Shown here piece by piece: positions 1,213 to 25,100 of a stretch of DNA of 64,000 bases; the stretch's first letter is position 1, and every line of letters starts with the position of its first letter. The DNA lies in NCBI RefSeq assembly GCF_006345805.1, contig NW_021835463.1, positions 1-64,000 on the forward strand, in the 5' to 3' direction. Made by a program: the position numbers and the translations under genes. This DNA comes from Octopus sinensis (Eukaryota). The notes under the pieces were generated by a model. That model was not told where the DNA came from. It searched no databases and saw only the letters and a program-made list of their open reading frames with translations.

Positions 1213-1289
1213 ATGCGACTTCTCGGAATAACGAAGAGAACGTTACATAACCTGCCTCGTGTAATTAACACCATCAGTCGAATGAATTC
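1213..1289 (+). CDS. Nucleoside hydrolase exon 1 ([26 protein letters not shown])
   Basis: ATG in ACAAAATG context. The phase-2 donor GTTAGT at 1290 matches the phase-2 acceptor at 5675 (tc|c = Ser). Second in-frame ATG at 1282. Confidence 0.7.
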
Positions 1290-1334
1290 GTTAGTATTTT
1301 ATCAATTTTATGATTATATTTCATTGTGTGCGCA

Positions 1335-1424
<90 letters not shown>

Positions 1425-3052: not shown

Positions 3053-3095
<43 letters not shown>

Positions 3096-3157
3096 CATAT
3101 ATAGTGATCTGATATATACACACACTTATATACACACATATATATACACACATGTAT

Positions 3158-3188
<31 letters not shown>

Positions 3189-3786
3189 TATACTGTTATG
3201 AGGGAAAAACTTGAATCTTGTGAATTTTCAGAAGTCCTCTCCCCGCCCCTTGGAAAAAATTTTCCCCACAAATTCCTTTATAATCGTAATGTATGCCCTT
3301 TTGATAGGTTGTAAACATTAACCAAGAAATTTAGGGTCATTAACCAAGAAAATTGTCACAAAACAATGACGAAAGGGCCGGGGGCTCAACGTTGACACTG
3401 TGTGCTATGCTCCATAGATTATACCATCTTAGCTTGAAAGTAGAGTGGGAGGCGCAATAAATTGTGTAGTCCTAGACATTCAGTGTCAGAGAGAAGAAAA
3501 GGATGGCCACCTCTGGAATATCTTTTATCATAGATTGGGTCAAATCTCGCCCTGTTATTTCAAAACTAGTGCAAAACCATTTGAATGTTGAAGTCTTAGA
3601 TATACAATGCGTGAGAAAAGGGCATGATTGTCAGGGTTAGATGGTAGGATCACCTGTTATGGCTGTGTCCTCTGTATAATGTATAATTTACTATAGAGCT
3701 CATCCATCATTAAAATTCATTGGATGGTTTTCAACACAGCAGTTATTAATGATGATGATGATGATGATGATATATATGCACACACA

Positions 3787-3832
<46 letters not shown>

Positions 3833-4449
3833 ACATATACTGTTATGAGGGAAAAACTTGAATCTTGTGAATTTTCAGAAGTCCTCTCCCCGCCCCTTGG
3901 AAAAAATTTTCCCCACAAATTCCTTTATAATCGTAATGTATGCCCTTTTGATAGGTTGTAAACATTAACCAAGAAATTTAGGGTCATTAACCAAGAAAAT
4001 TGTCACAAAACAATGACGAAAGGGCCGGGGGCTCAACGTTGACACTGTGTGCTATGCTCCATAGATTATACCATCTTAGCTTGAAAGTAGAGTGGGAGGC
4101 GCAATAAATGTGTAGTCCTAGACATTCAGTGTCAGAGAGAAGAAAAGGATGGCCACCTCTGGAATATCTTTTATCATAGATTGGGTCAAATCTCGCCCTG
4201 TTATTTCAAAACTAGTGCAAAACCATTTGAATGTTGAAGTCTTAGATATACAATGCGTGAGAAAAGGGCATGATTGTCAGGGTTAGATGGTAGGATCACC
4301 TGTTATGGCTGTGTCCTCTGTATAATGTATAATTTACTATAGAGCTCATCCATCATTAAAATTCATTGGATGGTTTTCAACACAGCAGTTATTAATGATG
4401 ATGATGATGATGATGATATATATGCACACACACAAACACACACACACAC

Positions 4450-4495
<46 letters not shown>

Positions 4496-4736
4496 CTATG
4501 AGTTTTTTCACTTTCCATCTATGCAATCTACTCACAAACCTTTAGTTGACTCAAGGGCATAGTAGAAACATTTGCCCAAGGTTCCATGCAGTGGGACTGA
4601 ACCCAGAACCATGTGGTTGGGAAGCTAACTTCTTACCACATATGTATGTATGTATTGTATATATGTGTTTATGTCTGTATGTATGTGTGTATATATATAT
4701 ATATACATAATTTTATTATATATATATATAACTATA

Positions 4737-4795
<59 letters not shown>

Positions 4796-6040
4796 GATAA
4801 TAATAATAATATTAGGGAGTATAATTCTAAACTTATTTTGATTTTAATCACCTTACTTTGAAATTGTATGGATAATACCATACTAAATTCTAGTGCCTCA
4901 ACTTAAGTACCATATTCATCTGAATCCAAATTTTTGCTGAACTCATCTACCATACCCAAAGTATATACAAACATACACACACACACACACACATACACAC
5001 ACACACACACTCATAAACAACAGGCTTCTTTCAGTTTTTGTCTACCAAATTAACTCACAAAGCCTTGGTTTACTCGTGAGAAATATAGAAAAGGATTACA
5101 GATAAGTTCACTGTGAAGGAAGTTCACCGCGAGGAAAGTTTACCAAGAAAATATATCCATAGTATCTCACCATTAACAGTTAAACACTATTTTACTGAGG
5201 AAAAAACTGAAAGTAATGGAGATCAAAACATGTAATCAGGGATTTTACCTTTTGGGTTAAAACATAGTATGTACTAAATAAGAAGAAAAATAAACTTAAC
5301 TTTCAATTCACACTTCTTTACAACATAAATCAACACAAAATTCAAATTTATATTATTCAAAATCCTGTTTGACATTAAAAAGCTATGATAAAATTGAAAA
5401 TTATTATAGAAAATTTGTAATTAAAAGGTTTTTAAAAATTGTCAAATGGAGATTCCCTGTGGTGAATTGATGATGGTGAACTTTCCCTGCAGTGAATTGA
5501 TGACAATGAACTTACCGGACATGGTAGAAAACACTTACCCAAGGTACCACACAGTGTGATTGAACCTGAAATGTGTGTTTGGGAAACAAATTTCTGAACC
5601 ACACTGCCATGCTTGCACCTTTTTCATTTGGTTTTATTTCATTTCTTGTTCCTTTTGTTTTTTTCTTTTACCAGCAATAAGAAAATCATAATTGATACAG
5701 ACCCTGGTATCGATGATGCTCAGGCTATTTTGATGGCCCTGGGTAAGGACAGCAGTGTAGATGTTGTTGCCATAACAACTGTTCAGGGCAATGCCCCTGT
5801 TATGAATACTAGTTTGAACACGCTACGGTTACTGAAGGTAGCCAATAGACAAGATGTAAGTATTCTTTTATTTCCCTCCTTTCTCAACAAATAACAAAGA
5901 CTTCAGGGTGTTCAGCTCATAATGACAAACAAGGTTGTGTGTTCAATTCCAGAACTAGGTGGCATGTTGTGTGTTTGAATAAGGGTATTTCACATTGCTT
6001 TAGTCTTCTCAGCTATAAATGAGTACTGGTACATCTCTAA

Positions 6041-6101
<61 letters not shown>

Positions 6102-8168
6102 ACTGTTGCATTTTGTATGTCTTTCTGGGTCGAGGGAGAGTAGGCTGAGGTGTCTCTGTCTGCTCACGACTACACAGGCATCTAAAACAATTAGTAAAAG
6201 CATAGTATATGTTACCAAGGCTAGCTGTTCTCTACTTTGTACTAAACAGAAAAGGAAGAGCAACAACGTCCCTGGCCTTTTTACTGGGCCTCTGAGACTG
6301 GCGAGAATTAAAGGAGAAAGTTATACTCAGAGCATATGATCAGAGCAGAGGGGACTCAGCTATAGGTACCTAAGAACCAGATGGTGATATTAAATGGGGT
6401 GATCTATTTAATCAGCCACTTAAGAACAAGTGCAATCATTCTGATGAGCTTCTGCTAAAGGTATTTCCATTTTTTTTATCTTAAAAATAAAAATTGGAAA
6501 TGCCTTTATTTCACCATTTCCATCTACTTAACTATATCATGGGTTTCTGAACCAGGTGGCATGTTGTGTCCTTGAGAAAAGCATTTCATTTCCCATTTGT
6601 GAAAATTACTACTAGCGATAGCTGGAGTTTAACACAGTGACAGATTAGTGTCCTGTTCAGGAACAAAAGGGGATCTTGTACTTTCAGTCTAAACTCCTTG
6701 AACATTCAAACAAATTCTGACCTCACTGAACCTGTAGGCTTGAGGCAGACTTTTAAAACTCCTCCATATTATTGTACAGCTATATAACTACTACACTAAG
6801 TACTGTAAAACACTGTTGCTATATTTATTAAGTCAAGCAACCATATAGAGATGATGGTAACAAACTTTTGTTTTTCCACTGAAAATTTTCATAAGGCTGG
6901 AACCATGGTTGCATGTATATATATATATATATGTTTGTGTGTGTACATACACACAAATAGGTGAATGTACTGTAGTCATATAGTACCAAGATTGACATCT
7001 ACTGTGCAGTGCCTTGAGCAAATATCCTCAGTCATAATTTGAAGTTGACCCAAACTTTATAAGATAGAAATGGCATGGAAGCTTATCAGGGTGATTATAC
7101 CTGGTCATGGATGATAGATTTAATTGATAACCTAGTTTAACACCACCACCTGACTCTTGGGTGTCTATAGTAGAGCATGCTCTGTTTCAAGTATCAACGT
7201 TCAGTTTAACTTTCTTCTTTCATCCCACCAAAGGCCCAGGGATGTTGCTCTTCTTTTCCTCCCCTAATTACTCACCAATTAACTCCTACCTCTAGCCTGT
7301 AGACTTTCTGTAGCTGTAGTGTGATGGAGGAAAGGACAACAGAAAAAGAAAGAAATACAAAAGGCCTTACCTGTAGACCTCGGCGGGATGAGCGATCACT
7401 ATCAAGAAATAAACATGTCCTTTCACGCTGCCGTTTCTGTTTGAACTGACCACATGTGCTTCCTGTGCACACATGCCCCGTGGCTGCCCCACAGGCCCCC
7501 GCAGTCTTCACTTCTGTCTACTTCATCTGCAATCCCCTCCACCAACACCACACAGCTCATCACAGCCCATAACACCACTAACACTACAGTAGCTATTGAC
7601 TCTGTACCTTTCTACTTACAATTACAATGGCATCTGCTTGTTGGAACTAGGCCATAGTGTATCAACCTCCATCAAAGCCCACCTGGCACACTCCATCATT
7701 CATACTGCACCCATCCTTCCTTCCCAACCTTAACCACTATATATCCAATCCTTCCTTTCCTGAGTGTGAAGCCCTGGAATTCCTTCTTCTCCCATGTTTT
7801 TGCCTTTGTTCATCAGTTTAGATTTACAGGTGTGTAAGGTGAACAGTAATTGCACACGTCCAGCAAAACAATCTCTCAATTCTTATACCAAAATATTGTT
7901 TCAGATACCAGTGTTTCAAGGTTGTAAGTATCCATTAATGCAAAGAGCCCAGCATGCCCAATATTATCACGGCAAAGATGGTTTGGGAGATGTTCCAGAC
8001 AGTGAAGCACCGGGTTTGGATCACCTTCAGAAGGAACATGCTGTAAATGCTTTAATTCATCTCGTGAACCAAAACCCAGGTAAATTGATGTTGTTGTCAT
8101 TGCCACCACCACCACCACCACCACCACCACACCACCACCACCGCCGCCGCCGCCACCACCACCATCAC

Positions 8169-8203
<35 letters not shown>

Positions 8204-11200
8204 CCATCATCATCATAGTCATCATTGATGTCATCATTGTTATTGCTACCATCACCACCTTCATTGTTAACATCAACATCATCATCACCACCATCAACCA
8301 AATTCTTAAAAAAAAATGACATTTGCTCAAGTTGATGTGCAGTGAGATTGAGCCTGAGACCTTGTGGTTGTGAAGCGAAATTCTTAACTGTTCAGCTGTA
8401 CTGCATCTACTGAGATTTAAATAACATTTTAATTAAAGATCAACTCTTTTGATGACACTTTTCATGGCTTATCAAAAACAATTACTGTAGAACCCATGTA
8501 ATTTACACACCTTTTTTTTTTTTGCAAAAATAAAATAAACATTAGTGGGTGCGTAAATTACATGAGGAGATTGTTTCCAGAATTTTTTTAGAAATTTTTT
8601 TTGTTGAAAAATGACGTACAAAGCATAAACATCCATACTGGAAGTTGACTCATTTAATATCAGAATAGGTTTTTACAGAAAAAATAATACTCTTTTTACT
8701 CTTTTACTTGTTTCAGTCATTTGACTGTGGCCATGCTGGAGCACCGCCTTTAGTTGAGCAAATCGACCCAGGACTTATTCTTTGTAAGCCTAGTACTTAT
8801 TCTATCAGTCTCTTTTGCCGAAACGCTAAGTTACGGGGTCGTAAACACACCAGCATCGGTTGTCAAGCGATGTTGGGGGGACAAACACAAACACACACAC
8901 ACATATATATATACACATATATTCGACAGGCTTCTTTCAGTTTCTGTCTATCAAATCCACTCACAAGGCTTTGGTCGGCCCGAGGCTATAGTAGAAGACA
9001 CTTGCCATGCAGTGGGACTGAACCCAGAACCATGTGGTTGGTAAGCAAGCTACTTACCACACAGCCACTCCTGCACCTAATGTTGACTTTTATTTATGTT
9101 GGACAGTATAATATTTACTTTTTCTGTATAAATTTACTAAAACCATTAAATGGTTAACTACTTTTGAAATCTGACGTTCATGCTGGTAATCATGGTCCAG
9201 GCCATATTTTACATATTTTACTCGGTTGCGTAAAGTGTCATTCAAACTGATGTTTATTGGTAATTAAACTTAATTTGCAATACCTGTGTGTATTTATCAG
9301 CTTTGTTTTTGTTGGTAATTCTTATCAACAACTTTTCCTGTGATTGTGGTTTGAGAAGACATACAGCAGTACGCTAAAGATCAGACATAATCTCTTGTGG
9401 GCAAGAAATGTAAAATAAAGTTTATTATAAATAACGCAAACCCTTTGTAATTTAATAGCTTTCAATGTGATACTGTTAAACAGAAATTATTTTTATTTAA
9501 TGAAAATGTAATAAAATCTCATCATAAGTAAATGAAATTATGCTAAATGCAACTAAATTGTAAACCTTTTTCTCCTGGCTATATCGGCAATTCTGAAAAC
9601 TTTTGGGTGCGAATTTTACATGAGTAGAAGCTTTTTTAACAAATTTTATCCTGAAAATCACCTGCGTAAGTTACACAGGTTTGCAAATTCCATGGGTTTT
9701 TACGGTAATATAAAACTTAATCAGAAAATCTCACTGAAGTTCAATATCAGTTTCAAATTGTAGCACAAGGTCAGCAATTCCAGGGGAGGGGGCTAACTTG
9801 ATTAAATCAATCCTAGTACTCAACTGGTACTCATTTTATTGATGGAAGGCAAAGTTGACCTCAGAACCTGACGATGAATGAAATGCAGCTAAGAATTTTG
9901 CCTGACTTGGTAACAATTCTGTACCAGTTCACTATCAATAAGCAGGTAGTGATAGCTAATGTTCCAAAGTTCATTGATAACAAGAAAACTTGTTTTTGAT
10001 ATTTTTCTTTATAGTTCAAAATCCAAATTAAAACACTCTAAACCACATTGCTTATAAGCAAACAACTAATTGTTAATGATCTTTTTCATATTTTCTCTTA
10101 TGGTCACCTTGTAGCTGGAGAGTTTGCTTTGGCACTCCTTCACTACTTTCCTTTTATCTCCTCTACTATTCCCATCCACCTCCCTATATAACAGAGGTTA
10201 GCCATCTATCTCCTTTATAGCAAGATGCCTGTGCTTGTCCCTCAATCCCCTCTCAAATACGCCCCATTTAGCAGTGTGAGTTTTTTTTCCTTTTCCTCTC
10301 CTTGTTCTTCTGTCTTGCAAGTTACTTGGTACATTCACACACACAAAAAGCACTCAACACACTCTGTAAAGTGGTTGGTGTTAGGAAGGGCATCAAACTG
10401 TAAAAACTGCCAAAAGCTGACATTGGAGCCCATTGTAGCCTTGTGGCTCACCAGATCCAGTCAAATTGCCCAACTCATGTCAGCATAGAAAGTGGATGTT
10501 AAATGACGAGGATGATGATTATATCTATATGTATATGTATATGTGTCTGCTTCTTTACTCTAGAACATTAAAAATGTTCACTGCAAAATTTCTCTGTATT
10601 CACTTAACATTTCTTGAACTTCACCTCAATGTGTGTGTGTGTGTGTGTGTAAAACACCACACCAATAGAATGTAGAAGGCAATCACTGTGCAGCGGAATC
10701 TTGTTTGGGAAAAATTTTCCTTCAATAGATTTTGTGTGTAAAACACCACACACACACACACACACAAAATCTATTGAAGGAAAATTTTTCCCAAACAAGA
10801 TTCCGCTGCACAGTGATTGCCTTCTACATTCTATCAGAAATATATTAAAAAACTAAACTGTACACATCTTAAATATGTGACGGCTGCTGCTTCATGTGTT
10901 TGTACTAAAATATACAGATTTTGCATTTTTTACTTTTCAGGGGAGTTACATCTTGTTTCCTTAGCTCCTCTTACTAATATAGCCACTGCAATTACCTTAG
11001 ATCCAGATTTTGGTTCAAAGCTCAAGAGTTGCTATATAATGGGCGGAAATTATAAAGGTAATCTTTCATTTGTTTTCAATCTTACTTTCATATTTTTCTT
11101 TTCTTTTTTTATTTACCTTATTTTAATTCACCTTAATTCTGTATTTTATATTCATTTTGTTATCTTTTATCTTTTACTTGTTTCAGTCATTAGATTGTGG

Positions 11201-14200
11201 CCATCCTGGAACACCACCTTGAAGAATTTTGGTTGAATGAATCATATTTTTTTAAAGTCTGGTACTTATTCTGTTGATTCTCAAGCAGTGATGGGGAACA
11301 GTTTCCATCTACCAAATCTACTCACAAGGCTTTAGACAGCTTGAGGTTATAGTCCAAGGTGCCATGTAGTGGGAATGAACTTGAAACCATGTGGTTGGAA
11401 ACCTTGTGGTTGGGAAACAAGCTTCTTACCACACAGTCACACCTGTGCCTAAACGTTATGTTCAATTTTTCTGCCTCAAAAAAGCACTGATAAAACATGC
11501 ATATGATTAAAAGTGTCTTGTGACCATCACTTTTGTTTCCCAGACACTGGGCACCCAAGACCAATGTGTCCCTTTCAAAACAATAAGGTCTGATTTGAAA
11601 ACAACTTGGCTGCTATTTCTAGAAAGCTGATTCCCTCAGATGGCCTATGACATGTAGGGATTTCTTCATTTGATTGTGACATGTTGGTATTTTAAGTAGG
11701 GTGAAGTATATGCATCAATTTCATTACAGGAATATTAGAAAAACCATGTTATAACATCAGTTGTAATTATGTGTAGAGTTCACACACAGAATTGTTGAAT
11801 CATGGATCAGTTCTTACGTCACAACACTGCATCCTTCAAATATATCTTGCTTCCTGAAATTCACCAACACAGTTCCTGATGTGCATCCTTTCCTCTTTAT
11901 CGTCCTTTTACTGTTCACTACATGTGTCTATGTACTATGCATGCGATTTTGGCTGTCATAGCTCTTTTTCTTGACTTAGACATTTCTTTCTGTTCCTTCT
12001 TTTACTATTTTCCTGATGAGTTGTGCATCTGAGCACTGTATAGCATATGCTCATTATTGCTATTATTATAATTATGTATCAAGACAACACCTTTCTCAAC
12101 TGCACACACAACACTTCTTTGTGCTTTGTAATTATACTCACATAATTATTTCAACGATATCCAAATATAAGAAAACCTTCCCACTCAAGATATATTGTGA
12201 AAATGGATGTGGAATAACCAAACCATTTTGCAGGCTATAAATCTAAAATGAAAACTCTACAAAGTGACTAAAAGCTATGAAGTGACTTAAACAGACGTTT
12301 TTTTCTTCTGTCATATATATTCCAGGAGTTGGCAACATATCAAGAAGTGCTGAGTTCAACTTTTACAATGACCCGGAAGCAGCAAGCATTGTTCTTAAGA
12401 AACTTTCTTGTCCAATAACACTGATAACATGGGAACTATGCGAAGATTTAAAGCAACCTTCAGTAAGTATCAGAAATTCAGGAATCAAATAATGGAAACG
12501 GATCTGTTGGTGCGGTTGTCAATTAGCTTCAGTTCTACTGCAGGGCATCTCAGGCAAAAACCTTCCACCACAGACTTCAGATGACCAATACTTTGTCCTT
12601 GTAAGTAGACGATGAGTGAATTTCTCAACCATGCAGCCATACCAGATTCATTCCTAAAGGATCCAACTCAGACCATTCCTATGAAGTCTATACCTCTACC
12701 ACCCTTAGACACACTTAGAAAAAAAAAAAATAATTTCAGCATATACAAGGTCTGATGAGCAAGTATCCAGACTGTTGCCATAGTAATGAAGCTAAAGCAT
12801 GCAGAGTGAAGCTGCATGGCAAAGATTGACCTTGAATTCTGCTGTGCATATGAGCACTGAGTTTTGATGTTCTCACTCACTTCTGCTGCTTACAGCAGTG
12901 CTTGGAAGGAAGGTATGTAGCGTGTGTTCGTCACATTGACCATGACAAAGAAAATTGACATGGCAATACCTGCTCAGAGGTCTACACAAAGTTGTAGAAA
13001 GCGTATGAGTTGCACACAAGTGTACAAGTGGTTCAGACGTTTCCAAGATGGCTGAAAAAATGTTGATATTGATGAATGCTCTGGGAGACCTGCAACCAGC
13101 AGAACTGAGAAAAATGTTGCAGATGTGTGTGTCGCTGTGAGGGGAAATTGTCAAATCACCATCCGTGAGTTATCAGAGGATGTGCAGATTATTTATGGTT
13201 CATTTCAGTCCATTATCAATGAAGATTTGAGTATGAGACGTGTGTCTGCCAAGTTTGTGCTACAACTACTTTCAGCTGACCAAAAAGACATTTGGGTTTT
13301 AGTTGCACAAGATCTCCTTGATTCTGCTGAGAATGATGAAAACTTTTTGAAAACTTTTGGCAAAATTTGATGCAGATTCTCTGCTTAACTTTCACATCCT
13401 ACACACCTTCCTTCCAAGCACTGCTGTAAACAATGGAAGTCATCGAGAATGTTAAAATTTGGTGCACATGCACTGCAGAGTTCAAGGTTAATCTGTACCA
13501 AGCGGCTTCACTCTGTGTGCTTTAGCTTTGTTACTATGGCAACAGTCCAGATACTTTTTGATCAGATCATGTATAGAATATACTCCTTATGTCTGTTGAT
13601 AGCTGACAAAACACTACATCCTTTAAATATTCCATACTTCCCAAAATTCACCAACACTACTCCTGACATGCCCATATACCCTTACCTTTTTATGGCTTTT
13701 TTACTGTTTACTTCTCCGTCTCATGTTTTATCCTGTGTGCTTTCCCTGTATTTCTCACTTCCATTGCTGTTTTTCTTTCTTTTTGCTTATGACTACTTTC
13801 TCTCCCCTCTTTTACCCTTTTTTACAACCGCTTTGTACAAAAATCTCATTTCTATTATCGTATTTGAATTTTCTTTTTATAGTCTTTTTTTGAAAAGCTG
13901 CTAATTCATCCTGGCAAGAAAACTGCTCTTATGCAAAAAGTCTTCAAAAATGCAATGAAACAGGCAGAGGCACGCCAACGTTATGCAGTAATGTGTGATG
14001 AACTAGCTATGGCAGCTATCGTGAACGATCAGTGTGTGTTAGACAGTGTGGAACTTTATGCAGAAGTAGAACTGAATGGATCTAAAACAAGAGGTCAAAT
14101 GGTACCAGATTGGACAAACATAACAGGCAAGCCAAGTAATGTTCAGATTGTGACAAAAATGGATCTGAACATTGTGGTAGACATCTTGAAGAAATGTTAT

Positions 14201-14209
14201 GATTTTTAA
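1213..14209 (+). CDS. Inosine/uridine-preferring nucleoside hydrolase family gene (6 coding exons, 337 aa): join(1213..1289,5675..5855,7905..8079,10941..11057,12326..12462,13883..14209)
   Basis: The spliced translation has the family motifs [11 protein letters not shown] (DxDxxxDD), [38 protein letters not shown] and [16 protein letters not shown]. All introns are GT..AG with matching phases 2,0,1,1,0. Total 1014 nt. Confidence 0.93.
1336..1422. repeat. (ATCT)n microsatellite
   Basis: About 21 perfect copies; explains the SIYL ORFs. Confidence 0.98.
2058..2296. mobile_element. MITE-like element with 45-bp inverted repeats
   Basis: 2058-2102 and 2252-2296 are reverse complements with 3 mismatches; AT-rich core. 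Confidence 0.75.
2495..2880. repeat. Tandem copies of a ~160-bp dispersed repeat (CCTCGGAAAATTCACAAGATCCGAG family)
   Basis: About 2.5 copies here; related copies at ~3200, ~3850, ~23670-23860, ~24770-25240, ~25680-25790 and ~26400-26580. Confidence 0.8.
3181..4480. repeat. Near-perfect 647-bp tandem duplication bounded by (CA)n
   Basis: TACTGTTATGAGGG at 3191 and 3838; apart from (CA)n length, only one indel seen between copies. Confidence 0.95.
5675..5855 (+). CDS. Nucleoside hydrolase exon 2 ([22 protein letters not shown]...ANRQD)
   Basis: Polypyrimidine tract + CAG at 5672-5674; donor GTAAGT at 5856; contains the DxDxxxDD Ca2+-binding motif. Confidence 0.95.
7905..8079 (+). CDS. Nucleoside hydrolase exon 3 (IPVFQG...HGKDGLGD...NQNP)
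   Basis: TTTCAG acceptor, GTAAAT donor, phase 0 to 1; family motif HGxDGLG. Confidence 0.95.
8100..8295. repeat. (CCA)n/(CAT)n trinucleotide microsatellite in intron 3
   Basis: Directly visible; source of the poly-His/Asp/Met ORFs. Confidence 0.95.
8485..9705. mobile_element. Non-autonomous Tc1/mariner-superfamily (pogo/Tc2-like) element with nested SINE
   Basis: Ends TA-CTGTAGAACCCATG and CATGGGTTTTTACGG-TA are imperfect TIRs flanked by TA. Confidence 0.65.
8686..9080 (-). mobile_element. Full-length tRNA-derived SINE (octopus type)
   Basis: Minus-strand head with A-box-like TGGCTGTGTGG and B-box-like GGTTCAGTCCC, internal (TA/CA)n, AAAAGAGT tail. Other copies or fragments at ~1-45, 4520-4630, 11160-11450, 19525-19693 (+), 25320-25440, 36690-37105, 42400-42680 and 45190-45520. 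Confidence 0.85.
10665..10834. repeat. Perfect 75-bp inverted repeat with 20-nt loop
   Basis: 10665-10739 is the exact reverse complement of 10760-10834. Confidence 0.95.
10941..11057 (+). CDS. Nucleoside hydrolase exon 4 ([12 protein letters not shown]...MGGNYK)
   Basis: TTTTCAG acceptor, GTAATC donor, phase 1 to 1. Confidence 0.95.
12326..12462 (+). CDS. Nucleoside hydrolase exon 5 ([19 protein letters not shown]...KQPS)
   Basis: TCCAG acceptor, GTAAGT donor at 12463, phase 1 to 0. Confidence 0.95.
12746..13571 (+). mobile_element. Internally deleted mariner derivative with ~180-bp inverted arms
   Basis: Both ends flanked by TA; the arms are degenerate reverse complements. Internal mariner transposase N-terminal remnant ([35 protein letters not shown]). 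Confidence 0.88.
13883..14209 (+). CDS. Nucleoside hydrolase terminal exon 6a (SFFEKLL...MCDEL...KKCYDF*)
   Basis: TTTTATAG acceptor at 13881-13882, phase 0, open to TAA at 14207-14209. Confidence 0.9.
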   Translation, partial: SFFEKLLIHPGKKTALMQKVFKNAMKQAEARQRYAVMCDELAMAAIVNDQCVLDSVELYAEVELNGSKTRGQMVPDWTNITGKPSNVQIVTKMDLNIVVDILKKCYDF

Positions 14210-14439
14210 ACCACAAACACTATACATGCATGCATACCCTTCTGATGTTACGTGACGATTATATACAATGACATTGTCATACAAATGGTCTCTTACATTT
14301 CCAGTTTTCTGGGAAAACATGAATCTCATTGTTCTGATGCAAGCATGGAAGAGTGAACTTTATGATGATGATGATGTTGATACATTGAAACAAGTGTGTG
14401 TGTGTGTGTGCATATGTTCCTTATGCATTCTAAAACCGA

Positions 14440-14683
14440 GTTGCCAATTTTGATGTATGGGGTATCAAAAGATTCAGTACTATTTCCACTACCAACTAAA
14501 CTTTATGTTCATTGACATATTTCCATTACAAAAACTTAAAATTATAATCTTTTCCATAACTCAAATATCGGAAATATTTTATACAACGACGATGACGTCA
14601 CATTTTCTATATGAGTGTCTACCTTAAAAGGCATCCATCATTACGACACACACCTCCATTCACTCACTCTATCTCTCTCTCTT

Positions 14684-14714
<31 letters not shown>

Positions 14715-14720
14715 AATCCA
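14440..14720. repeat. Interspersed repeat; inverted copy at ~22860-23120
   Basis: GGGGTATCAAAAGATTCAGTACTATTTCCACTA here versus AGTGGAAATAGTACTGAATCTTTTGCTACCCC at ~23075-23110. Confidence 0.75.
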
Positions 14721-16149
14721 TTTCATATACATGTACATACATCTTTCACCTCATTTCCTCCACTCTCTGCTCTCTCTCTCCCCTTTTCACTTTCGCTTTT
14801 CTTTCAATTTCTGCTCTCTTCAAGCTTAAAGAAATTAATTTTTACAGAATGACCAAGTGAAACACAGAATGAGAAAAAGATAGAGACACAAGAGAAAGAA
14901 ACAGAGACAGGAAACAAGTTTCTATAGAAGTTGAAAGATGGGTGAAAGGGAGATGCTGGTGTTTCATACCCTATGTATGTTCTATTGTTGTAAGTGAAAG
15001 AAAGCCAGCACAAAATTGATACTGTATGTTCTATAGGTGAAGGTGAAAGAAAGCGACACAAAGAGAGGGGGAAAGCAGGAGAAAAGGAGTAGCCAAACCC
15101 CCAGAAATGAGGTCATGTCGTACAATTTTAAGGTCATTTTCACTTTCGTCCTATGTTTCCCACATGCATAGAATTTGGCATTATCTTTGTCTTTCAATTT
15201 CTCATTAAAATGTACGGAGACCTTCTGCTGTTAACATATTACAACTACACTACTTTTTCTTCCTTTAGAATTACAAAAGGTATGCAAAAGTAACTTCCTT
15301 TGGCACACAGTTAAAGTTCTGTATGAATTATGTTATTTTTTGCTGTGCAATAAATTACAGCTCAAATTCTATGGAAATTACCTTTTCCTATTCTATCATT
15401 CCTGTTTGTGATGTGCATATTCCAAAACCTGATTTTCCATTTAAACATACAAGCAGGTTATCTCAGAAATCCTGTCCTTTACCTGTTGTTTCTAGCATGT
15501 CTGAGATGACATTTGCATACCCCCACCCCCACCACCATTTACTTATTTCTTTCTTCAATTTACCTACATTTCTGTTTTCCATACAGGAGATTTCAATTTC
15601 GCCTGAAAGCAGGTAGCTGATGGGTGACCGAGGTAGGGGAAGGGGCATTTAATATTTCTTTCAGAAAAATTAAATTTTCAAAAACAAATTATATTTCCCA
15701 CATTCGTAATCTCTGTATTTTATCACTTGCATAAAAAAACAAAATTCGAAAAACAGTTCAAAATTAGGAAATTTCGATGGGGAGGGGGGAAATTATAATT
15801 TTGAAAACATGATTTCTGGCCAAAATCATATTAACCCCTTTTTACTCCATGAAACAATACATAGTTTGTGATCCTTCTTGAGAACACAAATCACTTTCAT
15901 GCAAATTGTAACCCTCCCCGCCCCCACTTCACTTCTGGACAAACAATAACTTCCATTAAGCCAGTAATCCACTCCACTATATATCAACTAACAGAATGCA
16001 TTATGCTTATCAAGACAGAGTAAAGCCAGATCATTCACAGTTTACCGCTTCTTCTCATAAATAGCAGCATACAAATTGACATATTAATTTTTGCATATCT
16101 TTTCATTTGTTACTAAAAAATCAAATTATACAATGCACAACTTCAAATT

Positions 16150-17786
16150 GCTATGTCTTCCATTTTATATGTTCCTTAATTGTTCACTCTTTTCAGCCAT
16201 GCTGCCAAAATGAAGACATTCTCATTTATCTCCTCAAACAAGGGCCACAAAGAAAACTGCCTCTATTTGTGCTCAGGAAAACTCACTTCAGCGATGCCCA
16301 AATATGTAATATTTCAAAACGATCACTGACGGCAGAGATTTTGCTCTAAATTACACTTATTGACTGGGATGAATGCATAATGGCACACCATGATGCACTA
16401 GAAGCCCTAGATAAGCCGCTAAGGGATATTAGAAACAATACTGCCATTATAGGGGTGGGGGGCTTAACTGTTGTTCTTGCAGGGGATTTCAAATATTACC
16501 AGTCATACTACAGGGTACACGAGCTGATGGCATCCATGTGTGTCTGAAGTTTTCACCTCTGTGGAGGTTTGTTTGTCAGCTTTCATTAAGCAGCAATATG
16601 TGAGCTCACCTCTACAATGACCCCTTAGCTGAGGAATTCTTTCATCAACATAGACAAATTTGAATTGGTGCCTTACCATTGAATAACATCTTGCAACAGC
16701 ATGTGCTGCAATATGGGCACATGGTGTCTACATTGGCTGAGCTTAAAGAAAATGTATTTCTCACATTGCAACACAACTTCAAAAACATAGCATGGTTCAC
16801 AAATAGAGCTATTTTAACACCTTGAAATGAAAGCATTGATAAAATAATCCATGAACTCCCCCACATTCTACCTGGAGATGCTTCAACGTTTGTTTCCATT
16901 GATACTACCATAAATGAACATGCCACTGTTGAGCATCCAGTTGAATTTCTCTCTCTCTACAACCCACAGGACTGCCACTGCATTAGTTGTTCCTAAAGAA
17001 AGGTGCACCTATCATGCTCTTGAGGAATTTCGATCCACCACAACTATGCAATGGTACAAGATTGACTGTATCTCCAATGACAAGTCATGTCCTACAAGCA
17101 ACCATTATTGCTGGCTGTCATCGAGAAGAGATTGCATACATTCCATGCATGCTCCTCATTCCTTCAAATGTGCCATTTCAGTTCAAGTGCCTCCAGTTCC
17201 TGGCGCGATTATGCTTCGCTATGACAATCAACAAAGCCCAGGATCAAACTTTAAAAATTATGGGTCTCAATTTACAACTACCCTGCTTTTCTCATGGACA
17301 ACTATATGTCACATGCTCACAAGTTAGCAGTGCAGATGACTTGTTCATTTATTCTCTCAATACTTGGCTTATGCAAAACATAGTTTACCCAGAAGCATTT
17401 CACTTAACACATGTTGAAGTGTGCTGTCTGCCCAAACATTAGAGATGATGCTTTTCACAATGAAGCAGCTTTCTTTCCATGTACCTTACTTTCTGCAATG
17501 CAGATACCTATACATCCTCATACGTCATCCAATTCTTTAAATCCGTAAGTGTAAGTCATTTTGAGGGCAATATTAGGATTTCATTCTAATTTAAGCTGCC
17601 ATTCTACATGTTTTTGGTGTCAACAATTTCAGCATTGTTCTTCACAAAATGACCGAAAAACAAGTTTATAAAGAAGAGTTGTTTGTTTCACATTCCTTGA
17701 GTGCTGATTCTGCCCATAAGAAAGAAACAAATAATACAATGTGGCTGTAAGTCATAACATCCAGGCAACACCGGGATGCATTGCTA

Positions 17787-17787
<1 letters not shown>
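16150..17787 (+). mobile_element. Helitron remnant: PIF1 helicase pseudogene plus 3' terminus
   Basis: Motifs WDECIMAH, VLAGDF, KGAPIMLLRN..LCNGTRL, FAMTINKAQDQTL, FSHGQLYV, with frameshifts. Hairpin ATCCAGGCAACACCGGGAT followed by CTAG|T at 17784-17788. Confidence 0.88.
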
Positions 17788-17826
<39 letters not shown>

Positions 17827-18172
17827 ATGAAAATCATTTTAGCATTTATGACTTATGAAAAAATTTCTATACACTCAGAATTATGAAAGCTGTCAGGACA
17901 CTACACAAGCCTCAAAGATTCCATGCTTCCCAAAATTCACCAACACTACTCCTGACATACCCATATACCCTTTCTTTTTATGGCTTTTTTACTGTTTATT
18001 TTTCAGGCTTTTTGTGTTGTATCTTGTGTGCAAACCATGTATTTGTTACTTTCTTTGCTGTCTTTGACTCATGGCTGCCCTCAGTCCTCTCTTTTACTCT
18101 TTCTTGACCGCTTGTAGTGCACTTCATGCAAAGAAGCTCATTTCTGTTATCTCTTTCGAATTTTTTTTTCAG

Positions 18173-18496
18173 TCTTTTCTTAAGAATCAGCTATCACTTC
18201 CTGGCAAGAAAGCTGCCTTTATGCAAAAAATCTACAAAAGTACAATGGAACGGATAGACAAAGACCAAAGCTATATATTGTGTGATGAACTAACTGTGGC
18301 TGCTATCATGAACGATCAGTGTGTGTTAGACAGTGTGGAACTTTATGCGGAAGTAGAACTAGATGGATCTATAACAAGAGGTCAAATGGTACCAGACTGG
18401 AGAAACAGAATGGGCAAAGCAAGCAATGTTCGGATTGTGACAAAAATGGATATGAACATTGTAGTAGACATCTTGAAGAAATGTTATGATTTTTGA
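18173..18496 (+). CDS. Duplicated terminal exon 6b (SFLKNQL...LCDEL...KKCYDF*), candidate alternative last exon
   Basis: TTTTTCAG acceptor at 18171-18172, phase 0, no stops or frameshifts, 75/108 aa identical to 6a. Flanking intron and 3' UTR are also homologous; AATAAA at 18784. Confidence 0.85.
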   Translation, partial: SFLKNQLSLPGKKAAFMQKIYKSTMERIDKDQSYILCDELTVAAIMNDQCVLDSVELYAEVELDGSITRGQMVPDWRNRMGKASNVRIVTKMDMNIVVDILKKCYDF

Positions 18497-18783
18497 ATCA
18501 CAGACATTATACGTGTGTGTGTAACCTTCTCCTGATGACACATGACAGTTGTAAATAGCATTGTCATACAGGTGGTGTCTTTCATTTCCAGTCTTCTGTG
18601 AAAACATGTCTGATCATGGAGAAATTATTACCTTGCTCGGAGACAGGTGAGAGTTAAGCATTTGAAAGGCATCCAGCCATAGAAACTTTGTCTCAATGAA
18701 TCCCATTGAACTCATGGAAGCATGGAGAAGCAGACATTATAATGATGATGATACATTGAAACAAGTGTGTGTGTTTGTGTGGG

Positions 18784-18789
18784 AATAAA
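18784..18789 (+). terminator. Poly(A) signal downstream of exon 6b
   Basis: AATAAA about 290 nt after the stop codon. Confidence 0.55.
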
Positions 18790-18820
18790 ATGGAAAATGT
18801 TAAAAGATTTGGTCTGAAAT

Positions 18821-18837
18821 TTTATTTAATTTTTATT
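18821..18837 (-). terminator. Two poly(A) signals for the convergent minus-strand gene
   Basis: TTTATT occurs twice on the + strand, about 320 nt past the minus-strand stop. Confidence 0.5.
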
Positions 18838-19157
18838 TTAAAATATATTGGAGAATTCATATTGGTGGCCAAGGCTCTTAAAAGCCCAGTCCTCCATATA
18901 TGTATCTAGGGTAGGTAGGTAATGTAAAAATGTAAAATTCATTTCCAGAAGCAGCATTGGAAGCACTGTCAAATTAAATATTTTGCAAGATTTTAAAGAA
19001 ACCAGGGTTTCATCTCTTCCCGTGGATTTAATTTCTAGAGGAATGGATTCTGTCAATTTGATATTCTCTAGTTACAGAGCATGAGGGTCTCCAGAAACTA
19101 GGTGATGACGTTCAATCTAGCAATGATTAAGTCCACCAACAAATAATTACTTTTGAT

Positions 19158-22100
19158 TTATGCTCCAAGATATTCCAGCCATGGCTGTCCCATTTTTAAT
19201 TCAGGCACAATTTTTGTTGGCCTGTATTGTTTAATGTGTTGTTCTTGTTTTGTAAATTGTAAGATGTGATGAGATGGAGATTTGACAGCTACTTCTAGCA
19301 GGTCATGCAACCACACTGCAACACTGGAGTTCTCATCTCTGAATGTAGAGGAAATTGGTGAAGCAAGTAAAGGATTAGATGAATCATTCAAGAAACAGCG
19401 GTCCAAATCTAATAATGGTTTTACATTTTGAGAGAAAATCTAAAATGGAAACCCACAGATTACTGAAGCATTGTGTTCCTTAAAATCTTGTCATAATGTG
19501 GAATTCCATAATGCATCATTTCAACAGCTAAGACACAGGAGTGGTTGTGTGATAAGTAGCTTGCTTACCAACCACATGGTTCCAGGTTCAGCCCCACTGG
19601 GTGGCACCTTGGGCAAGTGTCTTCTACTATAACCTCGGGCCGACCAAAGCCTTGTAAGTGGATTTGGTAGACAGAAACTGAAAGAAGCTCGTCAGGAGTT
19701 ACAACTCGTCAGGATCCAGTTAGCTCAAGACATCATCAGGAGGAACCACGTCCGGTTTCGGCCCCTACTCCTCTACCGTTTTGACGTGGCGGTCCCCCCC
19801 CCACTTTCGGAGGTGTCTTCAGCTCTGGTGTTGGGTGCATGTCTTCTTTCTTCTTCTTTCTTCTGTTCCCTGGCCTCTTCAATGTATCGTCAGCGAGTGT
19901 CAGCCAGTGACTGACTGTCTTGTCAAATTTCTCCCTTTAAATACCTGCCACATAGGCTCCTGCAGGCAGCCCCAGCAAGTTGTCACGTGACACTGTCTCA
20001 CCTTAACTGACTAGTGAAGGCGGGTAGTTTTAGCCTGCTCTTTTTCTAAACGACCGTCACCTGTCAGTCAGCGAAGCTGATTCAGTCAGCTTGTCTCACC
20101 TAATGATATTATTTCCCGTCGGCGTGTTTATGACTTTCAAGCCATTTTCGGTCTTCCCGCTTAAGCCATATATAGAAGCTGGCTTTTTCAACCGCCTCCT
20201 GTACTCTCCTTATTAGTTTATGCAGCTCGGGGCTAGAAAAAACAAATCTTCTTTTGAAAAGCGTTGTCATTTTCTTTTCAATGAAGCCTCTAGCCCCCAC
20301 TGATAATATTCGACATTCCATCCCTGTTCTCTGCATTCTTCGATTAGCTTTTCATACCTCTTCTCCTTTCGTTCCTCTGCATTGCCGATGTTCTCTTCCC
20401 AAGGTACTGTCAGTTCTAGTAAAATTCCCATTTTCCGGTCTCTGTTCCATTGAACTAAATCCGGTCTTTTTGTTGTTTTTATTAGTGGAAATACTACTTG
20501 TCTTTCCAAGTCTGTGGCCACCTCCCAGTATCCCTTCCATCTTTCGTCTATCTCGTATACTTTACTTGTAGGCCTGGTTTTATAACCTTTTCCCTCCTTG
20601 TGGAAGTATACTTTCCTGCGCTTTTCTACTTTTGGGTACTCTCCCTTATTGTACCTCTCAATCTTCTCCTTGAGTGCTGCGCTTATGACACCGAGGACTT
20701 GATTATGCCGCCATGTATATCTTTCAAGTGCTAGTCTGCAACCTGACAGAACATGTCTAACCATTGCTTTCTCTCCGCATCTACACTCATCGGTTTTGTT
20801 TATGTTCCACCGGACTAAGTTCGCTGGTGAGGGTAGAACGTCGAAGGTAGACTTGATCAGGAAGGATGTCCTTGCTTGTTCCCAAGCCCAAAGTTCCTTC
20901 CATGATATTCTGCGGTTGATCACATATTCCTCCCATCTCAGGCACTGTCCCTGTTGACTGCATTGCACCAAATGTACATTTCGCCTTTCTTCTTCCTCCT
21001 TTCTCACTTCGTATACCACTGCCTCTTTCATCTCTTTTACACTGCTCTTGCAAAATGGCTTGAAATTTTGTGACCCTAGGCCGGTTCTAGCTTCTTGTGT
21101 CACTCCGACTATCTGCGTGCTTTAGTTTTCCGATCGCCCTGTTTACTGCCTCTTCCGCCTTCCATTTCCTCCCTGTTCGTACCTTTGGTGGATTTTCCCG
21201 GATGCTCTGATCTTTTGAATACCTTAGCATCATTACTGCCCTTGCCTTTCCTGCCTTATATTCTTTGGTGATTGATGTTATTAGTAGTTGCAGCATGGGT
21301 TTTCCATATAGTGCAGTTGTATTCAGTGGTTTCGGCAGACCAGGCCATTTTCTGATAAACACACTGCATCATTGCTCCATCCTTTCTACTCTACTCGAGG
21401 CTATTTTGTACATTTGCAATGGCCACATTATTCTTGGGTACAGCCCAAATTGCAGTATTCAACATTTGAATTTTCCCGGCAGCGTTGTTCTGTCAATTGC
21501 CTTTAATCCTTGTTCCACTAACTCGTGTGTTTCTTTCCCTTGCTACTTATCATTTAATAAATCTCTATACCATCTGCCGAGACTCTTTACTGGTTGTTCT
21601 TTCACCGTTGGCATGTCTTCACTTCCTATCCTGAATTTCACTTCTTCTTGCCTTCCTTTCACGAAAGCCACACTTCGAGATTTTTTGGCTTTGAATTTCA
21701 TCCTTGCCCATCCTATCAGTTCGTCCAACTGCTCTAATGTTCCCTCTGCTGCTTCTCTACTTTCTGATAATATAGTTACGCCGTCCATAAAAGCCCTTAA
21801 TGGTGTCTTTGTAACAGCTTTCTCACAGTTTGTAGATCTGAGTAGCATTTTCATGACTAGCACTAATAAGATGACTGATATGGTGCATCCGACTGCAATA
21901 CTTATTTCAAGCTGTTGCCACTCCGTTGTGAACTTTCCTGCTGTAAATCTCATCTTCAGGTTGTCGTAGTACAACATGAGCATTCGTTGAACATCTTTGG
22001 AATCCAAACGAAGTCCATCGCTGTTTTTATTATTGTGTGCAGAACAGATCCATAAGCATTGGCAAGATCTAGCCAAACAATAAATAGGTTTTTCTTCATT

Positions 22101-25100
22101 GTTTTTGCACAGGTGATGGCTTCCCAGATGGAAAATGCGTGTTCTATGCACCCAGGGATTCCTGCTTTTTGAATCGCTTCATTAACGTATCTGTTATGCT
22201 GTACGAATCTTATGATTCATCTAGCAAATGATAGGAATGAGGGTGACAGCATCTCTTCTGTTGCCCTCATCACATTCGGTCAAAAGTGGAATCATAAACG
22301 CTTAGCATTCTAGTCCACCAAAAAGCCAGACCGTTTTGATTATCCTGCCACGTTATTTTCGACGGACCAGAACCGTTTTAGCGATCTCATTTTCAACCCC
22401 ATCTCCTCCGATCATATTTTGGTGGTTTTCTGCCCCAAACTGGCAAACCTCAGCACAGAAAGACAGCCAATTTACAGAGGTTTTACAGCAGAATCCGAGA
22501 TTTTCCTCGATTAATCTGTGCTGAAGAAGTGATTTATGAAAATCAAAATCTTCCAAGGCGGAACATGGGTGTTTTCCAGAAAGGAGTTCTTCAATAAAGA
22601 TTCAGAATATCCACAATCCCTTCTGGATTGGCGACGTCGTCGTACCATCCTACGGCAACACTACAAGTTCGTTTCCTTGTGCAAAATACATGGAAAATTA
22701 TATGTCGGACAATTGTGGGTTAACGGCAGGACACCGTGTTCCATGAAAAACGTAATGGTAGTATTATTTTTACCGTGGAAACGGAGAACTCCTTCATAAA
22801 GAGTGATATTGCAACAGTTGCATAGAGCTAGGATGTTAGAGAAAAATTAGGATTTTGTGTATCTGTGCGCGCACATGTGTAAATAGAAGAGAAGAGAGAA
22901 ATAGAGTGAGTGAAGGTGATGATGGATGCCTTTTAAGGTACACACTCATTTTGAAAATGTGACAGCATGGTCGTCGCATAAAATGTTTACGATAGATAAC
23001 TTATGGAAAAGATTATTTTAAATTTTTGTAATTCAAATATGTCCTGTCAATGAAAATAAAGTTGGCGTAGTTAATAGTGGAAATAGTACTGAATCTTTTG
23101 CTACCCCATACGTGAAAACTGATCCACACACCCCTCCCTACTCAGCAATAGAGGGTGCGTGAGCGCAACAATCTCTACAACTCAAAGAAAATGAACGGCT
23201 TAAACAAATGGAACAGCATGTTTTACATAAGGGTTGTGTAGGTCGGTCTTGTTTTTTCGCTTTAAAGGTAAACGATTCTCATAGAAGCAAACACGATATT
23301 GAATAATTCGGTACTACTTAAGAAGAGTGGTCCCTCTCCTTCTCTCTCTCCAGCTCCCTCCCCTCCTCTCTCTCTAGCTCCAACTCAACCTCTCACTCTC
23401 TCCAGCTCTCTCAGCAGACGACATTGAAGCGTTACTTCTGAACGGCTGAAAATTTCTTCGCTCCAATTAATAAAGGTAATTTTTTGCAGCTTATACATCC
23501 AGAAATCAATATATAGAGTAATTTTAGCAGGTATGTAAAACATTGTTTTCATAAACTTTGACTTGTTTCACACAAACATTAAAAAGGTTTATTTTTTTCT
23601 CCAGACATCGTTACCACTAACTTTTATAACTTCAGCATTCGTTTATCACCAATTGTCATCTCGGAAAAAAAAATTTTTTCCACAAATTTCTTTATAATAG
23701 TCATGTATGCCGTTTGAAAGGTGTCTGTTTAAACTTTTATTGAAAAAAAACTGCATTTTCCCAAAAGTTACGAGAGAAAAGCTCGGATCTTCTGAATTTT
23801 ACGAGGTCTTCTGGTCGCCCTCTTGCAAGAAATTTTCTCCACAAATTTCTTTATAATCGTCATGCTTTTCAATCTTTTTGCTGGAGCCGAACCCCAAGGA
23901 AACATTCCACTGGCTTGAGGAACCCCTGTGCAATAATCTAATTGTCTTATGCAAAAAAAACAGCATTTAATTAATGAAATGAAAATACTCATGTTCAGAT
24001 TTATTTACAATTAAATCACAAACTAAAAAAATTGTCATGTACATATGCAATTTTATTCTTGCATCTACGTTATTATTAAAACGTGTATTAAAAAACTTTA
24101 GTTTTAATAGGTTACATTTATTCTCATCAAAAACTCAACGAGAAACTTGAGCCTGGTGTTTCTTGCACAACTCTTTAAGATTGGGTCGTGTTTCTGATAG
24201 ATACACACAAAGTTCATCTTCCACAGACCGCAATTGTGCTTGATGGTTGTCAGGACTAAAAATCCAAATTCACAGGAGTAGGAGTTGAAAACTGCACAAG
24301 AAGTCGCAGCGCTTTCTGGGCGATTGCAGGATACTCCTTTTCAACCAGCAACCAAAATGCATCCAGGTGAAGCTCAGAATGTTCTGTCATTTAAAACACT
24401 GGCAAGTTCTTCTTCTGTTAATGTGAACTGTTCTTCAAATGGCTCAAATTCCACAAATAGGTTTCTAATCCAGTCATACTGGTCAACAGATATCCATGGA
24501 AAATATTTGTCAAGATTTGTTAACAAAGTGTGTAAATGGTTCAAAATCAGTAGCGCAGCTTCTTGACAATTCCTTTTAAAAACACTTGGAAACATTTCCA
24601 AATTTCCTGCAGCTATGCGTTTCTTCCATATTGTCAGTTTCTTCTGAAAAGCATTTATTTTGTCAGTAGAAGACAAGATATTTTCGTTCCTGCCCTGCAT
24701 GCCATTGTTCAAGAGGCTTACCTCATGAAATATATCGGCAAGATATACTAACTTGGAACCCTATTTTCCTTAAAGATACGAGGGAAACGCTCGGATCTTG
24801 TGAATTTCCAGAAATCATCTCACCACCTTTTTTGGAAAAGACTGTCGCCATAAACTTCTAGGAAATCTGAATGTATGTCAAAAGGAATATATTTCAATTA
24901 TATTTCATAGAATAAAAAAACCCATTTTCCTTAAAGATACAACGAAAACGCTCGGATCTTGTGAATTTCCAGAAATCATCTCCCCATAAACTTCTAGGTA
25001 ATATGAATGTATGCCAAAAGAAATGCATTTCTATTAAATTTCATTGAATAAAAACCCCATTTTCCTTAAAGATACGACGGAAACGCTCGGATCTTGTGGA

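Follow-up and report, generated by a model that had tools for sequence, protein, structure and literature searches.

A tandemly duplicated last exon and annotated alternative C-termini in a predicted Cys-type nucleoside hydrolase gene of Octopus

We analysed a stretch of 64,000 nt from Octopus sinensis (RefSeq assembly GCF_006345805.1, contig NW_021835463.1, positions 1 to 64,000 of the forward strand, hereafter the window), which carries a predicted nucleoside hydrolase (NH) gene, called on the + strand at 1213-18496, with two homologous last coding exons in tandem (6a and 6b). According to our reading, a block containing the last exon was duplicated in tandem, the two copies now serve as alternative last exons, their exchange may affect the nucleobase side of the active site, and the uneven divergence between them results mainly from constraint. 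We give this reading as a whole a probability of about 0.7. Within it, the alternative use of the two last exons by one gene is well supported. The exons of the gene and the two copies of the block are located as follows:

1213-1289, + strand: alternative first coding exon, with donor GTTAGT, placed by its peptide match to XP_029657176.1 and by reading of the DNA.
5675-5855, + strand: common exon A, with the DTDPGIDD Ca2+ fingerprint; ends in phase 0.
7905-8079, + strand: common exon B, located by tblastn of the spliced products.
10941-11057, + strand: common exon C, located by tblastn of the spliced products.
12326-12462, + strand: common exon D (exon 5 of an earlier, preliminary description of this DNA); ends in phase 0, with a GTAAGT donor at 12463.
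13597-13882, + strand: duplicated intron segment, copy a, with a polypyrimidine tract and AG acceptor; blastn gives 78% identity to 17884-18172.
13883-14209, + strand: last exon 6a, the proximal copy; 108 codons and stop, 100% match to the C-terminus of XP_029657175.1.
14210-14410, + strand: 3' untranslated region (UTR) of copy a, homologous to that of copy b; homology stops at 14410 and the ancestral AATAAA is gone.
14411-17883, no strand: spacer between the copies, rich in repeats, with a fragment of a Pif1 2B domain (Helitron-like) at 16987-17442.
17884-18172, + strand: duplicated intron segment, copy b, with a T-rich tract and CAG acceptor.
18173-18496, + strand: last exon 6b, the distal copy; 107 codons and stop, the ancestral length, 100% match to XP_029657176.1.
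18497-19043, + strand: 3' UTR of copy b and its flank; an insertion of 87 nt occupies 18609-18695, and AATAAA lies at 18784-18789.

The pattern of a duplicated exon is far beyond chance. Self-BLAST aligned 13597-14321 with 17884-18608 (78.0% identity over 745 nt, E=2e-170) and, in a second segment, 14319-14410 with 18696-18781 (79%), copy b having an extra 87 nt (18609-18695) relative to copy a. As read in the window, the duplicated block thus covers at least 0.8 kb at 78% identity. Exons 6a (327 nt) and 6b (324 nt) are both in phase 0, lie 4.29 kb apart, and are served by the same GTAAGT donor of exon D at 12463. The preliminary description, made from the letters of the sequence, had reported two open exons with phase-0 acceptors and the same KKCYDF* end, all of which was confirmed from the DNA, including a polypyrimidine tract and AG at the acceptors. 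Its count of identical residues between the two exons (15/37 before the CD motif, 60/71 from CD onward) was exact upon recounting, and the roughly 280 nt of upstream intron that it considered homologous, along with the 3' UTR, correspond to the self-BLAST alignment, which extends over 286 nt of intron before the exon and some 200 nt of flank after it. It had also found no second copy of the upstream exons. Tblastn searches with both spliced products agree with this, since they matched exons A to D once each and no second copy of them in the 64 kb. An assembly artefact or a collapsed haplotype was ruled out, since the divergence between the copies is 22% and four assemblies contain both.

The original block was longer than what is left of it in the window. 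The downstream flank of copy a in O. bimaculoides matches the flank of copy b up to ~19043 (window coordinate). Hence, the block first duplicated was no shorter than 1.1 kb, and the AATAAA that is now at 18784 was part of it. This hexamer was kept in both b copies and in the a copy of O. bimaculoides. Copy a of O. sinensis and O. vulgaris was rearranged after position 14410 and lost it; the next hexamers after 6a in O. sinensis are at 15204 and 15349. The segment at 14411-15290 contains an inverted copy of a 150-nt segment. Upstream of exon D, the intron contains a ~110-nt element (11805-11940) that is ~74% similar to 13597-13712 and to 17884-17995. Judging from this similarity, the element may be an interspersed repeat, and as such a substrate for unequal crossover.

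The two isoforms are not new, since both forms are already in RefSeq/ENA for O. sinensis, O. vulgaris and O. bimaculoides. In O. sinensis, the product of exons A to D and 6b is XP_029657176.1 (isoform X2, 100% identity and coverage), the product with 6a is XP_029657175.1 / XP_029649592.1, and the chromosome copy of the locus has models for both, XP_036368219.1 (6b) and XP_036368218.1 (6a). Three O. vulgaris models include 6b (CAI9738686, CAI9738687, CAI9738688) and one includes 6a (CAI9738689); the annotation of this genome took in alternative splice forms from Iso-Seq and RNA-seq assemblies by means of PASA (PMC10700109). The O. bimaculoides models are XP_014774676.1 (6b) and XP_014774668.1 (6a). 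The idea that 6a and 6b are alternative last exons of one gene, already put forward in the preliminary description, is thus upheld by the annotation of both forms in three Octopus species, and by the integrity of both exons over ~34 million years (My).

Independent evidence on the use of 6b comes from isoform X3 of O. bimaculoides (ending in GKPVFS*), which is exactly rebuilt by joining an internal donor of 6a (CCAG/GTAATG, the slash marking the cut) to the 6b acceptor, out of frame. Because this model needs the 6b acceptor, the acceptor appears to be used and transcription to run past 6a. The junction (38051 / 42048 at the O. bimaculoides locus, L002) corresponds to position ~14135 of the window, and its product is a truncated enzyme. 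The same site in O. sinensis is CCAA/GTAATG, a weaker donor, and this species is without an annotated X3-like model. It does have a different model named 'isoform X3' (XP_036355901.1), which consists of codons 1-15 of 6a followed by 6b and maps to 13883-13927 and 18218-18496. We rejected it as evidence, since none of the six possible junctions has GT-AG. It is probably an artefact of template switching or alignment at the shared CCTGGCAAGAAA stretch. A large protein search with exon D and 6b (153 aa), aimed at transcript-derived fragments of the Logan assemblies, gave 17 candidates, none of them useful.

The age of the duplication was assessed by comparing genomes. Four assemblies (the two O. 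sinensis haplotypes, O. vulgaris and O. bimaculoides) were compared, and in each of them the two exons are intact, with their acceptors, and in syntenic position. The latter two species have the same exon order with a spacing of ~4.25-4.3 kb, and 6b is undecayed in both. Only one last exon is present in Argonauta hians and in the cuttlefish Acanthosepion pharaonis, and nothing similar was found within 10 kb downstream of it. A neighbour-joining tree of last-exon peptides grouped 6a and 6b as monophyletic, next to Argonauta and the cuttlefish. The ratio of quartet sites for orthology to those for concerted evolution, between O. sinensis and O. bimaculoides, was 31:1 for the intron, 11:0 for the 5' part of the exon and 20:1 for the UTR. 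Since the sites favour orthology, the duplication predates the split of O. bimaculoides from the O. vulgaris-sinensis lineage, dated at ~34 My (PMC10700109). These sequence comparisons place the event after the split from Argonauta and the cuttlefish and before that between the Octopus species. The distance between the intron segments of copies a and b (p ~0.21-0.22) is ~2-3 times that between species (p ~0.075-0.11), which suggests that the duplication is a few-fold older than the species split, provided that the intron was unaffected by conversion.

The products of the gene are typical of the NH family. Both spliced products match the Pfam profile PF01156 (IU_nuc_hydro) with 293 and 292.6 bits (E ~1e-87, for a curated cut-off of 34.2 bits), over profile positions 1-293 of 297. 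The Ca2+ fingerprint DTDPGIDD (DxDxxxDD) is in exon A, and the third Ca2+-binding Asp, expected ~230 residues further on, is an invariant column (D267/D272) that both last exons retain. Among solved structures, the best score by sequence was that of the NH of Caenorhabditis elegans (PDB 5MJ7, E=7e-47), which has the same Cys before the last Ca2+-binding Asp. In HMMER alignments the CD of 6a and 6b is matched with Cys253-Asp of this enzyme and with the His-Asp of the inosine-uridine nucleoside hydrolase (IU-NH) of Leishmania (8ctm). Both last exons read ..(M/L)CDEL.., and the Cys is found at this column in 85 of the 113 animal homologues. Enzymes of group III are those where a Cys, before the last Ca2+-binding Asp, replaces His241 of group I or Trp260 of group II (PMC8910321, PMC10526354). 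The octopus gene is accordingly predicted to encode a group III (Cys-type) NH. A second, paired active-site Cys is usual but not obligatory in group III; in the octopus protein it is replaced by Asn, the HGC of the nematode enzyme being aligned with QGN. Singh and colleagues reportedly identified this second residue, in 2017, as Cys42 of the nematode protein. Nothing found in this analysis indicated alternative last exons in the C. elegans gene.

Structure models, which the preliminary description had proposed as a check, gave confident NH folds for both isoforms: AlphaFold2 predicted them with a predicted local distance difference test (pLDDT) of 92.6 (6b) and 91.8 (6a) and a predicted template modelling score (pTM) of 0.89 and 0.88, respectively. 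The best 50 matches of the 6b model in Foldseek were all NH structures (template modelling scores of 0.76-0.92). Residues 1-203, with the Ca2+/ribose site, are common to both isoforms. Of the 37 positions in the two helices and the loop that lead to the Cys-Asp, 22 differ, as do 11 of the 71 from there on. In the models, the variable part folds into two helices, one short and one long (16 residues in 6b, 19 in 6a), and the loop preceding the Cys, just before which confidence drops in both isoforms.

The preliminary description had noted that divergence between the exons is strongly uneven, and the analysis of substitutions by segment confirmed it. Between 6a and 6b of O. sinensis, the rate of synonymous substitutions (dS) is 0.205 in the 5' part and 0.197 in the 3' part, both near the intron distance, whereas the rate of nonsynonymous substitutions (dN) is 0.367 and 0.071, a five-fold difference. 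Since dS is equal in both parts and dN is five-fold apart, the unevenness in this species reflects constraint and not age or conversion. The 3' part evolved with a dN/dS ratio (omega) of 0.22 between 6b orthologues (8.5 synonymous and 8.5 nonsynonymous changes) and of 0.68 between 6a orthologues, i.e., below 1 clearly for 6b and weakly for 6a. The 5' part of the 6b orthologues accumulated 16 nonsynonymous and no synonymous changes; the probability of finding none of 16 synonymous is 0.006-0.027, depending on kappa. Its nonsynonymous rate of 0.185 is 2.4 times the local neutral value of 0.075 (P ~0.001), and the ratios of nonsynonymous to synonymous changes differ between the 5' and the 3' parts of 6b (Fisher, 0.001-0.003).

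The divergent segment was proposed, in the preliminary description, to be the helix and loop region that closes over the nucleobase. Indeed, its counterpart is helix alpha8 together with the loop that leads to the catalytic residue (PMC8910321). Work on group I enzymes has shown that two hydroxylated residues of alpha8 are required for efficient purine hydrolysis, that the introduction of two Tyr in YeiK increases kcat/KM for inosine 50-fold, and that the C-terminal part of the helix becomes ordered upon base binding, this region setting the efficiency towards purines or pyrimidines (PMC8910321). Nine differences between the exons are fixed in both species, and positions 219, 223, 227 and 231 are all among them; these four make up a stripe with i, i+4 spacing along the long helix (P ~0.002, post hoc). 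Positions 219 and 223 are the best conserved of this stretch (101 of the 113 homologues have Phe at the former, and 93 have Ile at the latter), and 227 is Ser or Thr in 82 of them. The residues of the stripe are Leu, Val, Ala and Ala/Val in 6a, and Phe, Ile, Thr and Ile in 6b. Furthermore, 6a carries one extra codon (Ala238), inserted three residues ahead of the Cys and absent from the 113 homologues, from 6b and from Argonauta. Since 6b holds the residues of the family consensus, and 6a has minority states and the insertion, we regard 6b as the canonical form and 6a as the derived one. The fixed differences would lie on the conserved inner face of alpha8 and beside the catalytic Cys, as far as alignments and predicted models allow to place them.

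The comparison with group I can be taken one step further. The variable segment of the octopus protein is homologous to the helix and loop preceding the catalytic residue in Escherichia coli RihB/YeiK and in the IU-NH of Crithidia fasciculata, and Tyr225 and Tyr229 of the Leishmania IU-NH align, in HMMER, with octopus positions 227 and 231, where the isoforms differ (Ala in 6a and Thr in 6b at 227; Ala in 6a and Ile in 6b at 231). These residue correspondences come from a pairwise HMMER alignment with indels. In contrast with group I, the catalytic residue of the octopus enzyme is Cys, not His, and the Tyr pair is missing. That the exchange of exons retunes the nucleobase side of the active site, in kinetics or in base preference, is thus a tentative proposal to which we give somewhat less than even odds. 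The switch of specificity suggested in the preliminary description is plausible, but has to be tempered because the segment is weakly constrained across the family, so that any NH would show part of this divergence.

Several observations weigh against our reading. The case for the use of 6b is one of annotation models and selection signatures. The a copy in this haplotype is without the ancestral AATAAA, the poly(A) signal of the block. The test on the alpha8 stripe was defined after seeing the data. The known rules of specificity come from group I and not from the Cys-type enzymes of group III. The most variable window of 37 residues in the whole protein, among the 113 animal homologues, starts at 197-201, i.e., it is the divergent segment itself, with a mean entropy of 2.33 bits for 1.1-1.9 elsewhere in the alignment. 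The omega between 6a and 6b is 1.8-2.1, which is not significantly higher than 1. Finally, in O. bimaculoides five of the 16 changes in 6b match the state of 6a, so that conversion may have imported them; when these are removed, the excess over the neutral rate is no longer significant (P ~0.09-0.25). The use of Argonauta as outgroup suggests that at least two of the five would be genuine changes in 6b of O. sinensis.

The last three observations are also what one would expect if the exons were real alternative last exons whose protein difference is neutral, the pair being kept for regulation (by different 3' ends and UTRs, or by subfunctionalised expression) while the 5' part drifts. We find this unlikely, if worth keeping in mind. 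The fixed differences are clustered at the conserved positions 219, 223, 227 and 231 and beside the Cys, and not at variable surface positions, and drift does not readily account for 16 nonsynonymous changes without a synonymous one, at 2.4 times the local neutral rate. Besides, there is no sign of extra conservation of the duplicated intron and UTR, which might have hinted at a regulatory RNA structure, since interspecies identity is about neutral: the homologous parts of the 3' UTR are 91.5% and 93.2% identical between species, for ~92.5% in the neutral intron. A more extreme case of lack of function, in which 6b is the decaying relic of a partial duplication, spliced as noise or never, seems to us hardly credible. 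The chimeric XP_036355901.1 does show that the annotation of the locus is not flawless. Yet, four assemblies spanning ~34 My all have an intact 6b with a conserved acceptor, the 3' part of 6b has an omega of 0.22, the contrast between its two parts is unlike neutral decay, it keeps the consensus residues of the family that were lost in 6a, and transcript-based models use it in three species.

One may also ask if the uneven divergence was produced by gene conversion homogenising the 3' two-thirds of the exon, rather than by selection. The test for conversion, also among the checks of the preliminary description, was positive for the 3' part, most strongly in O. bimaculoides. There, the orthology signal is gone (two sites for orthology and three for concerted evolution), the identity between 6a and 6b of O. 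bimaculoides is 96.3%, higher than in either orthologous pair (synonymous deficit, P ~0.007-0.02), and three species-specific states are common to both paralogues, including Val/Glu at codon 99, when ~0.4 were expected (P ~0.006-0.016). However, conversion cannot be the main cause in O. sinensis, where dS is the same in both parts of the exon and dN is not, and as a general explanation of the pattern we consider it very improbable. The substitution patterns instead indicate that gene conversion is real but secondary, the main cause of the unevenness being the constraint on the amino-acid sequence.

Our preferred reading, of a duplicated block providing alternative last exons, implies a simple series of events. 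A block of at least 1.1 kb was duplicated in tandem, in the Octopus lineage, from a single-copy group III NH gene. It included the last coding exon together with its 3' splice site and ~290 nt of the preceding intron, as well as the 3' UTR and the poly(A) signal. The exon D donor (12462) could then be joined to the proximal acceptor at 13883, with cleavage and polyadenylation downstream of 6a. Alternatively, this acceptor would be skipped and the donor joined to the distal acceptor at 18173, the transcript ending with the AATAAA at 18784. The choice between acceptors would be an ordinary competition between alternative last exons.

The other end of the gene is also variable. There are at least four annotated alternative first coding exons: one rich in Arg (resembling a targeting presequence), one starting with MG.., one giving a 72-residue extension (MPTT..), and one starting with MYVM... 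None of the last three was located within the 64-kb window, and the first exons other than 1213-1289 are placed upstream of it. Each last exon is annotated with at least two different first exons in the RefSeq/ENA models. Because each last exon combines with several first exons, subcellular targeting may vary too. The first intron contains a tandem duplication of ~646 bp (3127-3839 and 3773-4487, 97.6% identical), flanked by microsatellites.

Over its first 28.5 kb, the window matches exactly the beginning of the unplaced O. sinensis scaffold VCDQ01004248.1 (72,916 nt). The copy of the locus in chromosome CM016880.1 is 99.75% identical to this scaffold over 19.8 kb and represents the second O. 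sinensis haplotype. Given this identity, VCDQ01004248.1 is an alternative haplotype of a single locus. The alignment of the two haplotypes ends at 19814. The window ends in a 15-bp minisatellite (consensus AATTCAGGGGCAGGT, ~784 copies, 74% matches) that covers 52372-64000 and is responsible for a GC skew of +0.45 in this region. This minisatellite is probably the reason why the scaffold is unplaced. Transposon remnants are found between 6a and 6b (the Pif1 2B-domain fragment at 16987-17442, + strand) and downstream of 6b (a reverse-transcriptase fragment at 21543-22151, - strand).

The Octopus exons belong to a known class, that of tandem-duplicated alternative last exons, and do not represent a new mechanism. 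Substitutions of C-terminal exons duplicated in tandem are recognised and enriched in humans, where they account for 77 of 236 events (PMC9741552), and pipe of Drosophila has arrays of mutually exclusive terminal exons (PMC9013439). The octopus case shares with these, and with the 3' exons of tropomyosin, homologous terminal exons that each have an acceptor, a stop codon and a 3' UTR of their own. It also shares the use of one terminal exon per mRNA and the identity of the isoforms outside the homologous region, which for the octopus is taken from the annotated models. It differs from them in three respects. Human tandem-exon events are mostly older than 500 My, whereas the octopus one is young (~78% DNA identity, at least 34 My) and specific to Octopus. 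Its exon is within a globular catalytic domain, beside the active site, and not in a tail, a transmembrane helix or a coiled coil. And, unlike in the known class, gene conversion between the copies is still detectable.

Similar pairs were found in NH genes of other lophotrochozoans, in a survey that covered the first 120 homologues. The clams Ruditapes philippinarum and Mya arenaria and the nemertean Lineus longissimus each have a pair of isoforms (X1/X2) that share all residues up to the exon boundary found also in octopus (after ...LPW/QPS) and diverge beyond it. The tandem last exons are at 12467-12805 and 12885-13217 of the Ruditapes locus (L006), and at 10817-11146 and 11665-11985 of the Lineus locus (L007). 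These pairs differ from the octopus one by being old, with 33-40% amino-acid identity, and in the bivalves the swap changes the residue at the catalytic position, Val in one exon and Cys or Ala in the other. Since 6a and 6b cluster together in the tree of last exons, the octopus duplication is independent of those of clams and the nemertean. We found no paper linking nucleoside hydrolases with exon duplication. A bolder generalisation, which we think doubtful, would make the terminal exon of lophotrochozoan NH genes a 'nucleobase module' (alpha8, the catalytic-position residue and alpha9) that was duplicated repeatedly and independently, one gene giving two enzymes that differ in base preference or in leaving-group chemistry, with alpha8 of Octopus 6b under positive selection.

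The physiological role of animal nucleoside hydrolases is largely obscure and the Cys-type enzymes of group III have scarcely been characterised. For annotation, the locus provides a clear case, of determinable age, of a young substitution of C-terminal tandem exons, with measurable gene conversion, inside a catalytic domain, when most known C-terminal events affect tails. The recurrence in clams and a nemertean suggests that the terminal exon is a favoured evolutionary handle in this family. Two naturally occurring isoforms whose differences are almost confined to the base-facing helix would offer a ready-made test of what sets specificity in group III enzymes.

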